From Macrostomum lignano (Eukaryota), in assembly GCA_002269645.1 (NCBI GenBank), contig NIVC01000947.1, positions 248,001 through 312,000 on the forward strand: 64,000 bases of DNA, given 5' to 3'. The notes under the pieces are model-generated. The model was given only the letters and a program-made list of their open reading frames with translations, was not told the DNA's origin and did not search any database. A program made the position numbers and the translations under genes. Positions 6,201 to 63,514 of this stretch are shown here, piece after piece. Each line of letters opens with the position of its first letter. Position 1 is the first letter of the stretch.

Positions 6201-9200
6201 CGGCTGCCGCTTCTTTAGGAGCCCCCTGATGCTGACGATGGACCGCTTCGGGATGCGCAATGTACACCTGCTGCGGCGGCAGGCCGTGTTCCGGTGCGTG
6301 CCCACTGGTTGATTGATTGATTAATTGGTTGATTGGATAGTTGAGTGATTGGTTGGTTGGTTGAGTGAGTGATTGGTTGGTTGAGTGATTGATTGGATGG
6401 TTGAGTGATTGGTTGGTTGGTTGAGTGATTGATTGGTTGGTTGAGTGATTGATTGGTTGGTTTATTGATTGATTGGTTGGTTGAGTGATTGTTTGGTTGG
6501 TTGAGTGATTGATTGGTTGATTGAGTGATTGATTGGTTTGTTGAGTGATTGATTGGTTGGTTTATTGATTGATTGGTTGGTTGAGTGATTGTTTGGTTGG
6601 TTGAGTGATTGATTGGTTGATTGAGTGATTGATTGGTTGGTTGAGTGATTGATTGGTTGGTTTATTGATTGATTGGTTGGTTGAGTGATTGTTTGGTTGG
6701 TTGAGTGATTGATTGGTTGATTGAGTGATTGATTGGTTGGTTGAGTGATTGATTGGTTGGTTTATTGATTGATTGGTTGGTTGAGTGATTGTTTGGTTGG
6801 TTGAGTGATTGATTGGTTGATTGAGTGATTGATTGGTTGGTTGAGTGATTGATTGGTTGGTTTATTGATTGATTGGTTGGTTGAGTGATTGATTGGTTGG
6901 TTTATTGATTGATTGGTTGGTTGAGTGATTGTTTGGTTGGTTGAGTGATTGATTGGTTGATTGAGTGATTGATTGGTTTGTTGAGTGATTGATTGGTTGA
7001 TTGATCGGCTGGTTGACTACTCGATCGATTGATTGATTTATTGCTCGATTGATTAATTCATTGATTAATTCATTGATTAATTCATTGATTAATTCATTGA
7101 TTGATTCATTGACGGATTGCTAGAGATTGATGGATGGATTAACTGACTGACAAATTGAGTAATTTATAAATCTAATATACTATTAGTAAAGGATTATTTT
7201 GTTAACATATGCGAGAAACAAGAAATTCATCACTCGCTTTATCACTCTCCGTCTGGCACTTCAATAGTTCTACTGAATTTAATAAAAAGCATAGATACTC
7301 GTCAATTGGAACTCCAGTCATCCCGGTCTGTTCCTGACTTGGCTGGAGCAGCTTGAGCAGCAAACCCGCGGCATCATCACCTGCCTCACAGTGCTCAACT
7401 TGTCTGTGTACTCGGCTCTAATTGCGGGCCAGCTCACCGTCCTGACTCCAGTCACCCTGCTTATCGATTCGACCGAAGACCAAGGAGACTCGGCGCTGCA
7501 TCACTGCCTGCTGCTGGCCTTCGTGATATTGGGGAACGGATACCAGGTGCGCTCCACTGACATTGTCACTCCTATTGTCACTCTCCTAGTCACTCCCAGT
7601 GTCACTCCCAGTGTCACTCTCCTAGTCACTCCCAGGGTCACTCTCCTAGTCACTCCCAGTGTCACTCTCCTAGTCACTCCCAGTGTCACTCTCCTAGTCA
7701 CTCCCAGTGTCACTTTCCTAGTCACTCCCAGTGTCACTCTCCTAGTCACTCCCAGTGTCACTCTCCTAGTCACTCCCAGTGTCACTCTCCTAGTCACTCC
7801 CAGTGTCACTCTCCTAGTCACTCCCAGTGTCACACTCCTAGTCACTCCCAGTGTCACTCTCCTAGTCACTCCCAGTGTCACTCTCCTAGTCACTCCCAGT
7901 GTCACTCTCCTAGTCACTCCCAGTGTCACTCTCCTAGTCACTCCCAGTGTCACACTCCTAGTCACTCCCAGTGTCACTCCCGCCGTCTCTCCCGCAGGCC
8001 GTCATGCTCATCTCCTTCCTAGTCGGCAGACGGCGGTCCCTGAGTCACTCCGGCTGCCCTGCCGGTCCCCGCGAGGGCAACCCCGAGATCGGCCGCTACG
8101 CCGCCTGCTGCTCCGTCTGCTGCCTCTGCGCCGTCGCCCTCCTCGCCCTGCTGACAGCGGCGCCATTCCAGCCCGGATCTCCGGCCGCATCGGCTGCTCA
8201 CCTGGCGGCCTCGACTGCGCAGCTGCTGCTGCTGCTGACGGCCACCTACCTGACTCTGTGCCAGCTGCGCAGCCTCCGCTGGGAGCCCGTGTCCCAGTTC
8301 GCATTCTGCCTGATCTGCTGCCTGAACTCCTTCATCCCGTTCACGGTGCTGTACTGCTTGCTGATCTACCTGTTCGGCAGGCTGCTGGCTCCCGAGGTTG
8401 CCAAGGCCGCAGTCGCCGCAGGTGATGGAGGGGGAAGTGCTGGCGCCCAGGCTGAGATGGGATCTGGCGCTCTTCAGGTGAGACTGATATCGTGATATGA
8501 TATGCAGCAGGTTGATCTAAGGAGGTCAAGTGACCCCTAATTATTCCTTGAACAGAATCTATTTGGAGTCACGGGGGTCAAGTGGCTTCTATATTTGTTG
8601 GTTATTTAAGTCGGGGTCAAGTGACCTCGTTCTGTAATGTTAAATGAACCATTTAAGCTAGTGGAGGTCAAGTGACCCCCACCTTCAATTGGAATCTAAT
8701 TTGACACCAGTGGAGGTCAAGTGACCCACCTCAATAGAATCCTACAATATTTGGGACCAGTGGAAGTCAAGTTACCCCCCATCAGTAAGAATCCCAGCTG
8801 AGACCCGTAGAGGTCAAGTGACCCCCTCCTTCAATAGAAATCCCATTTGGGACCCGTGGAGGTCAAGTGACCCCCCTTCAAAAAGAGTCCTACAATATTT
8901 AGGACCAGTGGAAGTCAAGTGACCCCTTCCCCTTCAGTAAGAATCCCAGTTGGGATCAGTGGAGGTCAAGTGACCCCCTCCATAAATAGAGATCCCATTT
9001 GTTACCAGTGGAGGTCAAGTGCCCTCTTCAGTAGGAATCCCAGTAGGGAACAGTGGAGGTCAAATGACCCACTTCAGTAAGAATCTCAGTTGGGAAGAGT
9101 GGAGGTCATATTCGAGACCTGTGGAGGTCAAGTGACCCCTTGTTTTCATATGTTTTTCTACAAGAATCCCAACTGAGGTCAAGTGACCCCAATCTGCCCA

Positions 9201-61400: not shown

Positions 61401-63514
61401 GCCTACTGTTGGGTTCGGTAGGATGCTGGCTTAAAATAGGGGGATTTTGAGTAGTGCAGTCTGGGGTAGAGTGGCTTATATTGGAGTCACCTAGAATGGT
61501 GTAGAGTCACGTAGAGTCGGTAGAACGCTGGAGTAGTGTAGAGGGGCTAGAGTAGAAGTAGAGTGGAGTAGAGACGTGTAGAGTGGATTAGAGTGGTTTG
61601 GAGTGGGTTAGAATGGGGTAGAGAAAGTATATTGTGGTAAAGTGGGGTAGAATGGGATAGAGTGGGTTAGAGTGGGTAGAGTGGGTAGAGTGGGGAAGAG
61701 TGGGGTAAAGTGGGTCAGAATGGAGTAGAGTGGGGTAAAGTGGGTCAGAATGGAGTAGAGTGGGGTAAAGTGGGTCAGAATGGAGTAGAGTGGGGTAAAG
61801 TGGGTCAGAATGGAGTGGAGTGGGGTAAAGTGGGTAGAATGGAGTAGAGTGGGGTAAAGTGGGTCAGAATGGAGTAGAGTGGGGTAAAGTGGGTAGAATG
61901 GAGTAGAGTGGGGTAAAGTGGGTCAGAATGGAGTAGAGTGGGGTAAAGTGGGTAGAATGGAGTAGAGTGGGGTAAAGTGGGTCAGAATGGAGTAGAGTGG
62001 GGCAAAGTGGGAAGAATGGAGTAGAGTGGGGTAAAGTGGGTCAGAATGGAGTAGAGTGGGGTAAAGTGGGGAAGAATGGAGTAGAGTGGGGTAAAGTGGG
62101 TCAGAATGGAGTAGAGTGGGGTAAAGTGGGTCAGAATGGAGTAGAGTGGGGTAAAGTGGGTCAGAATGGAGTAGAGTGGGGTAAAGTGGGTCAGAATGGA
62201 GTAGAGTGGGGTAGAAAATTCAGAATTGGAAATGGATCAAACAGCAGGAGTGGTTGAGTGAGCAATGCTACGACCGTATGCAGCTACGGGTGCTATGCAG
62301 TCCCACACCTGACCTCGGTTATTTATACGAGTTAACGAGCATTTACCAATGTAACGGGTTGAGAAATAGACAAATACAAAAATATTCCCAGCTAGCGAAT
62401 TGCATTGTAAAGTTAAGCTATCAGGCCTTCAAATCCGCCAGATTGCAAGTTGACAGTGAATAGCAGCAACTGAAGAAATGAAGTTCCGACCAGGATAAAT
62501 AAATAATACTAAGAAAGATGGCAATACTCGAACTGCACTACTGGTTCACATTTTGGGGTTCGGGAAGTAGTATAGAGCAGACAAAAACACTGGGAAAAGG
62601 AAAAAAGCACTAGAGGCTGCTAATATTACTAATAAGCGGTACAAAATCAATTTAGACAATTTTCATTCATCAAGGATGTCCATTGTCATAAGTTTTTTTT
62701 CAAAATTAATTGTATCGAGGTTTAAATTAATCTGTCAATCAATAAATTTTTATTAGCTATCGATACTAAAAGATGAATTATTTTGTGACAGAATCAAACT
62801 GAAATCATTGGCTTGCATCATACTAAACTATATGATATGCTCTCTTACCCTTAGAAGACTTTTTGTCTGAAAGAAATTCACAATAAGAAGGTTAAATATC
62901 TCGCCGGGTTTTGCTAGCGGATTTATTTTATAAATGTAAAAAACTTGGTTAATATGGGTGATTGGAAATTTCAAATTAAACTCAACCAGCTACGACTTCA
63001 TGCTAGAAAAACAGCATAAACACACGTTACTTGCTACTGTTGAAGGCTGTAAAGTAGTCTGAATAACGTGTAATAGCATATCTATGCTGTAAATATTAAA
63101 ATATCTGCCCAATACAAGGACTTGGACAGAGAAAAAAAACAAAACCAAAATACTCGACGTTGCAACATTGCCGTTTTAAATTATTATGAAAAATAATTTA
63201 ATAATTAATAACTTCTTGAACTCACCATCGGCTCCCTCTTCGCTGTCAGCAACCAGCTCGTCATCGGAGCAAATGCTCAGAACGTTAACCAACATCTCGG
63301 TAACTGGTCAAATATGCGATTGAGTAAGACTAATTAGTTTCTAATGCAAAATCGAAATATTCAAGCAATATAAAACCCAAGCACGAACCTTTCTCGCCGA
63401 CAAACGGCAGGCTCCAGGTGAAAACGTCCATGAAATTTGGCAGCCAATAAGGATGCGGCGAACAGTTGAATTGGCGAATGTTCATCACGTTGTTCTCGTA
63501 CTTTAGAATGGCCG
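58455..63514 (-). CDS. PPP3CA: Calcineurin A (PP2B catalytic subunit), 3' part; complement(join(58455..58582,59284..59466,63226..63303,63389..63514)); 5' exons lie beyond the window
   Basis: [49 protein letters not shown] (CnB-binding), [23 protein letters not shown] (calmodulin-binding), [22 protein letters not shown] (autoinhibitory); phase-1 GT-AG introns throughout. The symbol denotes the family (PPP3CA/B/C co-orthologue). Confidence 0.96.
58633..59270. repeat. (ACAG)n microsatellite filling the last calcineurin intron
   Basis: Within intron 58583..59283. Confidence 0.96.
61560..62215. repeat. ~29-30-bp G-rich minisatellite (AGAATGGAGTAGAGTGGGGTAAAGTGGGTC) in a calcineurin intron
   Basis: Direct inspection. 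Confidence 0.94.

Follow-up and report, generated by a model that had tools for sequence, protein, structure and literature searches.

A TGACCC-pyrimidine core shared by otherwise unrelated minisatellites at a gene-dense locus of Macrostomum lignano

The genome of the free-living flatworm Macrostomum lignano is rich in tandem repeats, and here we describe a short sequence that recurs in the repeat units of many of them within one stretch of 64 kb (assembly Mlig_3_7, GCA_002269645.1, contig NIVC01000947.1, positions 248,001 to 312,000). This stretch, analysed as a whole, is called the window below, and all coordinates count from its first letter. The sequence, TGACCC followed by four to five pyrimidines (about 10 nt), marks a family of minisatellites whose units are otherwise unrelated. 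Its excess in repeat units is real within the window, and it is on this single 64-kb window that the excess is based. Why the core is there is a matter of interpretation; tentatively, we take it to be a DNA-level minisatellite core that would favour the birth or persistence of arrays and would occasionally be co-opted as a branch point in splicing.

An excess of one core in unrelated units

The minisatellite set curated here consists of 33 independent arrays (period of at least 10, at least 3 copies), more than the roughly 25 counted in a sequence-only reading of the same DNA. There are 216 occurrences of the hexamer RGGTCA, or its complement TGACCY, in the window. Nine clusters hold 192 of them, and in each cluster the hexamer belongs to the consensus unit given by Tandem Repeats Finder (TRF). 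That reading had named the same nine arrays, and all of them are present with the motif in the unit; their periods range from 10 to 50 bp and their copy numbers from 13 to 44. Counted by consensus units, RGGTCA is found in 9 of 33 and GGGTCA/TGACCC in 8 of 33. In the ninth array, at 52430-53503, 25 units have TGACCT and 16 have TGACCC.

The hexamer had also been claimed to be commoner in the units than expected by chance, and in this window the claim holds against shuffled units, Markov models and unique sequence alike. When the mononucleotides of each unit are shuffled, RGGTCA/TGACCY is expected in 0.6 arrays, with a maximum of 5 in 5000 trials (P < 2e-4). From the 31.6 kb of unique sequence in the window, TGACCC is expected in 0.34 arrays against the 8 observed (P = 3e-9, or ~6e-6 after correction for 2080 hexamers). 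It is the most array-enriched hexamer, and array units have TGACCC(Y)n ~25 times more often than does the sequence from which arrays are made. A dinucleotide shuffle is a poor null for units of 20 nt, since the shuffled unit often has the original word again (mean 3.0 arrays); therefore, the unique-sequence null and the Markov nulls were added. The Markov models were trained on the units themselves, motif-bearing ones included, and are a conservative null. They predict GGGTCA in 0.9 (order-1) and 1.3 (order-2) arrays, with P < 1/3000 for both.

Because the hexamer was picked after looking at the sequence, we also tested the maximum over all hexamers. The family-wise P is 0.003 for the mononucleotide shuffle, 0.027 for the dinucleotide shuffle, 0.013 for the order-1 Markov model and 0.17 for the order-2 model. 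The maxima obtained under these nulls appear to come from low-complexity words of the GAGAGA type. The runner-up among the hexamers, AGTGAC/GTCACT, is found in 5 arrays against 0.44 expected (P = 1e-4), an excess that loses significance after correction. This hexamer and the main core overlap in TGAC, and the arrays with AGTGAC/GTCACT lie at 4635-5340, 7601-7979, 8649-9108, 32622-32781 and 52437-53503.

In unique sequence TGACCC is not enriched, with 12 occurrences where the median hexamer has 13. These counts led us to reject a general abundance of the hexamer, or of TGA before C runs in unique DNA, as the source of the excess. A G/C run is present in 23 arrays; TCA follows the G run in 8 of them, and the next-best trinucleotide does so in 3.

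The conserved part is longer than the hexamer. When 12 consensus sites are aligned on TGACC there is no conservation upstream, TGACC itself is invariant, and position +5 is C in 10 of the 12. At positions +6 to +10, 33 of 45 bases are C or T (73%; one site per array); in the remainder of the units the figure is 79 of 151 (P = 0.009). Given this pyrimidine extension, the core is TGACCC(Y)4-5, about 10 nt long, which reads on the other strand as a purine run ending in GGGTCA. Thus the true core is TGACCC with four to five pyrimidines and not a receptor half-site as such.

Outside the core we observe no relationship between the units as a set. With the hexamer masked, similarity within the 36 pairs of motif arrays does not exceed that within the other 492 pairs. 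Among the 120-nt flanks of the arrays no 8-mer recurs in three arrays or more, and just one 7-mer reaches three. A self-BLAST of the repeat-masked window returned one unrelated segmental duplication only. Hence the core does not owe its presence to homology of whole units or to a mobile element, and the earlier idea of unrelated units with a shared core was essentially right, except that the core is longer than six bases. Whole-unit homology among the motif arrays was rejected with the core masked, and a few pairs share 13-27 nt including the core: the arrays at 18510 and 21547 have CTGGA(A)GGGGTCA in common, those at 8649 and 21547 have CCAGTG..AGGTC..TGACCCC, and those at 25752 and 28632 show 21 matches over 27 nt.

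Minisatellites can also be carried by transposable elements, either as tandem-repeat-bearing miniature inverted-repeat transposable elements (MITEs) or as repeats inside retroelements. As in such families, related short arrays are here dispersed over many loci; however, the conserved flanking modules and terminal repeats of the transposon-borne kind were found neither by self-BLAST nor in the 120-nt flanks. With no flank likeness and no dispersed similarity either, a transposon origin was ruled out.

Position and orientation of the arrays in genes

The gene models used here were inferred from open reading frames and homology, with the exception of CRIP1, the KCNH exons and the splice sites that are quoted. 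Relative to these genes TGACCC is in the sense orientation in six arrays, antisense in two, and in one array that is apparently not transcribed.

The first sense array, at 8515-9195 on the plus strand, has 13 RGGTCA and 11 TGACCY on that strand, and its unit holds an inverted copy of the core too. Its ~14 degenerate units have a period of ~50 bp and a conserved near-palindromic block, GGAGGTCAAGTGACCCC, and the array takes up the whole of intron 8478-9201 in an unnamed plus-strand gene that ends at 9606. The array at 21547-22186 (plus strand, 25 TGACCY) consists of ~26 copies of the 25-bp unit CTGTTGACCCCTCCAGTGTGTAGGT. It is located in the intron before the homeodomain exon of a plus-strand homeobox gene and stops 83 nt short of the acceptor (AG at 22269-22270, exon from 22271). 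Two further sense arrays belong to an Erg-type KCNH channel gene on the minus strand, whose exons run from 41511 down to ~25240. The one in its last intron, at 25650-26130, has 8 RGGTCA in ~21 degenerate 20-bp units (TGACCCTTCCTGTACATGTA, minus strand), and the one at 26564-26862 has 14 RGGTCA in ~15 copies of the 20-bp unit AAATGAACTGACAATGACCC (minus strand) and stops 4 nt from the acceptor AG at 26560-26559. In CRIP1 (51885-53616, plus strand) the array at 52430-53503, with 41 TGACCY on the plus strand and ~44 copies of the 24-bp unit GAAGAGTGACCTGAAACCCTGCAA, occupies the last intron (52334-53577) and stops 73 nt short of the acceptor. The sixth sense array, at 61538-62215, lies in an intron of the calcineurin A gene (PPP3C, minus strand, ~59190 to beyond 63550) and has 12 RGGTCA in ~19 copies of a 30-bp unit with a 10-bp sub-period (TGACCCACTTTACCCCACTCTACTCCATTC, minus strand).

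The two antisense arrays both carry TGACCY on the plus strand within minus-strand genes. The array at 12415-12975 (16 TGACCY) has 43-bp units with two TGACCCCCC each, its left-hand copies being decayed, and fills the inferred intron 13011-12327 of an HSP20-family gene whose last exon is 12326-11924. A stretch at 12841-12929 derives from the 12563 unit and has TGCCCC in place of TGACCCC. The array at 28470-29082 (17 TGACCY), with 10/20-bp units TGACCCTCCATGACCCTTTC (plus strand), lies in the KCNH intron directly before the pore exon.

The remaining array, at 18510-19105 on the minus strand, has 30 RGGTCA in 30 copies of the 20-bp unit TGACCCCTTCCAGCACCCCC (minus strand). It lies ~400 bp upstream of a TATA-like box on the minus strand (TATATAAA, 18110-18103), which is followed by an ATG at 18004-18002 and, ~70 nt later, by a GGTAAGT donor. 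Judged from these three signals, the array is probably promoter-upstream and not intronic. In the region 18002-18110 they also suggest an unannotated first exon of a minus-strand gene, possibly of the 307-aa HSP20-family gene.

The split of six sense to two antisense arrays is not significant. With a stricter module, defined as TGAC with at least six of the next eight bases pyrimidine, the split is 5:3 (P = 0.36). The mixed orientation that we observe, six sense, two antisense and one promoter-like upstream, fits a DNA-level cause.

Near-variants of the core are found in two more arrays on the minus strand. At 26861-27981 the 12-bp unit is CACTGACACCCT, with the variant CTGACACCCTCA, on the sense strand of KCNH; this array adjoins the one at 26564, and ACTGACA is common to both. 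At 63549-63911 a 42-bp unit contains TTGACAAGCCCCCTCACCC in the sense of PPP3C, and the array ends ~50 nt from the acceptor.

At least three introns in the window are filled from donor to acceptor by arrays: 41006-41433, 12327-13011 and 8478-9201. A 12-mer array and a 29-mer array make up the first of these, KCNH intron 1; in the HSP20 gene and in the unnamed plus-strand gene the intron is filled, in each case, by a single array family. As such introns are wholly made of tandem arrays, their splice signals must sit within repeat units.

Two of the motif arrays run directly into acceptors. The array at 8515-9195 ends in GAGGTCAAGTGACCCCAATCTGCCCAG, followed by CTG across the junction at 9201/9202, and its last TGACCC (9184-9189) is located 15 nt upstream of the acceptor AG at 9200-9201 (9186 to 9201). 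The array at 26564-26862 ends in TTTCAATGACCCCGCAG, followed by AGG across the junction at 26559/26558, with TGAC branch-point candidates 8 and 28 nt upstream of the AG (26587 to 26559). At both acceptors the TGAC of the last units is the sole branch-point-like element nearby. The other seven motif arrays end at least 70 nt, and up to ~2000 nt, from the next acceptor.

Explanations for the shared core

The reading that we favour, and hold tentatively, is that the core is a DNA-level property, independent of orientation, that would favour the local amplification of a sequence into an array or the retention of an array. A possible route is slippage or unequal exchange that starts at the core or is stabilised by it, and neighbouring arrays may seed one another. 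Where an array grew up to an acceptor, as at 9200 and 26560, the core could be used as a branch point because it looks like a branch point with a pyrimidine tract. Such a core is in keeping with arrays in either orientation, with the array that apparently lies upstream of a promoter, with units and flanks that are unrelated, and with the likeness among neighbouring arrays.

Several points weigh against it. A role of the core in the birth or maintenance of arrays, and any mechanism behind it, are what we infer. Beyond the single window, 8 kb of upstream sequence has four further arrays of which none carries the motif, bringing the overall count to 9 of 37. The order-2 Markov null leaves a family-wise P of 0.17. 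Further, ~22 single TGACCY sites in unique sequence never became arrays. Canonical G-quadruplex motifs are almost absent, so there is no obvious structural cause. Finally, the 6:2 sense excess and the look of a 3' splice site in TGACCCCT(T)CCAG fit a splice signal instead. Units prone to form G-quadruplexes were considered as a separate candidate and ruled out, with at most two canonical motifs per motif array.

YTGAC resembles the branch-point consensus, and the main rival explanation builds on this likeness. According to it the arrays are amplified 3' splice-site modules, whose units derive from, or are tolerated for, a branch point (yTGAC) with a C/T tract, in the sense orientation in introns. 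We consider this possible, if rather doubtful. A U2-type 3' splice site has the order yUnAy, pyrimidine tract, YAG, and the core has the same shape: TGAC, then a tract of C and T, sometimes followed by CAG. The acceptor motif of M. lignano is [T/C]TNCAG (PMC8629364), and two of the units contain it, TGACCCCTTCCAG and TGACCCCTCCAG. Six of the eight transcribed arrays are sense, and two of them, 8515-9195 and 26564-26862, reach to within 4-11 nt of real acceptors, where they supply the sole TGAC, with the last repeat unit 8-28 nt upstream of the AG that is used.

Acceptors outside the arrays also bear on this explanation. TGACC before real acceptors had been noted from the sequence, and we see it at 9200, 26560, 38018 and 63305, and at the putative site 3218. 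Among ~14 non-array acceptors, a list that is small and partly putative, three (38018, 63305 and putative 3218) have TGACY within 30 nt, where ~0.7 are expected (P ~0.035). The first belongs to the PAS exon of KCNH (38013-38040, minus strand); it reads TTTTGACCTTCAACTCAACCCCAG, and the A of its TGAC is 18 nt upstream of the AG. At the PPP3C acceptor (63304-63310, minus strand), which reads TTTGACCAG, TGACC abuts the AG, and the likelier branch point is a CTAAT located 30 nt upstream. The third (3195-3219, plus strand) is a putative (trans-)splice acceptor with an ATG 8 nt after it; a (TCTG)n array terminates there in CTGACCCCTATCTGTCCCCATTGCAG. The acceptor of a PPP3C exon at ~59468 has no TGAC.

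An array without the motif, at 32622-32781, ends at an acceptor as well. Read in the minus-strand sense, its 18-bp unit TTACGTCACTAATTCTAG has CTAG at its end and, before that, a branch-point-like CACTAAT. The KCNH S4 exon begins directly after the last unit (32622/32621), which makes each unit a 3' splice site in miniature. Within the unit there is also TGACGTAA, a word like the cAMP response element (CRE) or a PAR-bZIP site.

However, the proposal of amplified branch-point and C-tract segments made in the sequence-only reading is supported in part only. The C/T tract does follow TGAC and two arrays do end at acceptors, but the sense bias is not significant for either the core or the stricter module. 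Most motif arrays end 70 to ~2000 nt from an acceptor, and most copies of the core lie far from acceptors. The arrays at 12415-12975 and 28470-29082 are antisense despite filling or abutting introns, and the one at 18510, apparently promoter-upstream, seems not to be transcribed. The CC after TGAC lies outside the branch-point consensus, which does not need it, yet it is TGACCC that is enriched. In 25650-26130, moreover, the core is the less conserved part of the unit.

An unlikely alternative is local common descent, in which the arrays would be diverged offshoots of one ancestral minisatellite of ~20-bp units that was copied to sites close by through, for example, template switching or short templated insertions. 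Kinship between neighbours does exist. Over all arrays, unit similarity declines with distance (Mantel r = -0.09, P = 0.023), and for the 30 pairs with the greatest similarity the median separation is 4.8 kb, where 17.8 kb is expected (P < 0.001). This decay comes in part from adjacent compound arrays (12563/12841, 6309/6987/7048 and 26564/26861), and in the first and last of these, adjacent arrays share pieces. The best pairs of motif arrays, 18510/21547 and 25752/28632, are neighbours 2.4-2.5 kb apart in inverted orientation. A period of exactly 20 bp is found in 4 of 9 motif arrays and in 2 of 24 others (hypergeometric P ~0.03, post hoc). On the other hand, the residual similarity between motif arrays is gone once the hexamer is masked, their flanks are not shared, and they lie in different introns with ancient exons between them. 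As a set they are not significantly clustered among all arrays (P = 0.18). Descent would also leave the invariance of the core alone unexplained, unless the core were constrained in addition.

RGGTCA is the half-site of nuclear receptors, canonically AGGTCA. The arrays could in principle be multimerised sites for such receptors, or for another factor that reads TGACC, kept by selection, but we think this improbable. The half-site is in the units by construction, and the receptor proposal of the sequence-only reading fits the arrays poorly. As in known receptor elements, RGGTCA, and specifically GGGTCA, is found in tandem: in human telomeres maintained by alternative lengthening (ALT), COUP-TF2 and TR4 bind (TCAGGG)n arrays, in which GGGTCA can be read (PMC3518223). 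Possible readers exist too, as M. lignano has ~61 nuclear receptors, COUP-TF and TR2/4 types included (PMC8363021).

Three arrays fit the arrangement of receptor elements to some extent. At 28470-29082, and in no other array, the sites are 9-10 bp apart, resembling direct repeats of the DR3/DR4 type, and at 12415-12975 the spacing is 14 bp. The old array at 8515-9195 has an inverted pair of half-sites, AGGTCA-AG-TGACC, in the near-palindromic block GGAGGTCAAGTGA (GGAGGTCAAGTGACC), which is 87-100% conserved when most of the ~50-bp unit, spacer included, is 50-86% conserved. Its outermost decayed copies (8520-8640) retain almost nothing but this block. From its sequence the block pattern looks like a cluster of conserved binding sites or like conversion bias, and 8515-9195 is the only array that looks like such a cluster.

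In most arrays, by contrast, a receptor-type arrangement, with spacers of 0-8 nt as in dimeric sites or an A/T-rich 5' extension as in monomeric sites, is not found. Same-strand half-sites are spaced by 19-51 bp in six arrays, and the 5' flank is G-rich. The GGGTCA type predominates in seven of the nine arrays; the canonical AGGTCA type does so only in 52430-53503 (25 vs 16) and is level with GGGTCA in 8515-9195 (12 vs 12). Nor is the half-site consistently better conserved than its surroundings. Identity is higher in the core than in the rest of the unit in six arrays; in two it is lower, and in one there is no difference. The mean difference is 0.04, and 8515-9195 is the one array with a clear effect. 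In 25650-26130 it is 0.78 for the core and 0.86 for the rest, and TTCCTGTACA outlasts the core. Units that are nearly identical reflect recent amplification and not selection site by site. The comparison of the arrays with receptor elements is one of sequence.

Last, chance or regional composition, by which units rich in C runs in a GC-richer sub-region would happen to share a hexamer picked post hoc, is very improbable: the units are indeed generally enriched in CCCT/AGGG and ACCC/GGGT, 7 of the 9 motif arrays lie within the GC-richer 8.5-29 kb, and the family-wise P is only 0.17 (order-2 Markov) or 0.027 (dinucleotide shuffle), but TGACCC departs strongly from both the unique sequence and the unit-trained Markov nulls, TCA after a G run has no close competitor, and no other complex hexamer comes near it.

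The locus, known systems and implications

Tandem repeats take up about half of the window. TRF-masked sequence makes up 31.8 kb of its 64 kb (~50%), and simple and tandem repeats are 15% of the M. lignano genome (PMC5730564). In the gene-dense half there is one array per ~1-2 kb, with unique spacers of ~500 bp between arrays. Besides the genes described above, the window contains a gene for a small subunit of serine palmitoyltransferase (SPT; 88 aa, single exon, 1760-2026, plus strand). An Rfam search of the window gave no known RNA families.

Some of the other repeats are also related to each other. The TCTG/CAGA tetranucleotide class forms five separate long microsatellites (3015-3196, 9721-10399, 29935-30660, 43225-44145 and 58632-59272), and the units at 31243, 41010, 36010 and 14345 contain pieces like CTGTC/GACAG, so that the locus draws on a small vocabulary of repeat words. 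The segments 45852-48842 and 48842-51337 are a tandem segmental duplication with 84-97% identity. Its two copies carry CT-rich arrays of unequal length (46158-47586 and 49155-50006), which points to rapid turnover of arrays.

Vertebrate genomes have hypervariable minisatellites that share a core, the Jeffreys 33.6/33.15 families with the core GGGCAGGAXG. Judged by sequence features, these are the closest known kind; length hypervariability, germline instability or a link with recombination are behavioural marks of the vertebrate families. In both systems tandem units of 10-50 bp are found at many loci, dissimilar units have in common a core of ~10 nt with G/C strand asymmetry, and the core, far commoner in arrays than in unique DNA, is suspected of a role in generating them. 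Tandem units, a common core in dissimilar units and its over-representation are all present here in one window. The core itself is different, being TGACCC with pyrimidines in M. lignano, and canonical G-quadruplex motifs are almost absent. Further, the Jeffreys-type arrays are near telomeres, whereas here arrays are located in nearly every intron of a gene-dense locus. In the literature we found no report of a TGACCC/GGGTCA minisatellite core or of tandem-repeat families in M. lignano.

A bolder form of the amplification reading would be that TGACCC(Y)n acts in cis throughout the M. lignano genome to drive the birth of minisatellites, as a flatworm equivalent of the minisatellite or hotspot core of vertebrates, and is read by a sequence-specific protein such as a nuclease, a recombination factor or an expanded nuclear receptor. 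We regard this as speculative and unlikely. If true, it would help to explain why repeats reach ~15% of the genome and are found in introns.

Should the excess be only local, it is a minor curiosity of one locus, and its interest would rise considerably if it holds genome-wide. For splicing the consequence is more direct: in at least three introns the repeats reach the splice sites, so the units must carry splice signals. M. lignano is a model for regeneration in which an unusual burden of simple and tandem repeats hinders both genome assembly and genetics. If the core accounts for a quarter of the minisatellites throughout the genome, it would offer a concrete handle on the origin of arrays, and whether minisatellite cores are causes or passengers would become testable in an animal with transgenesis.

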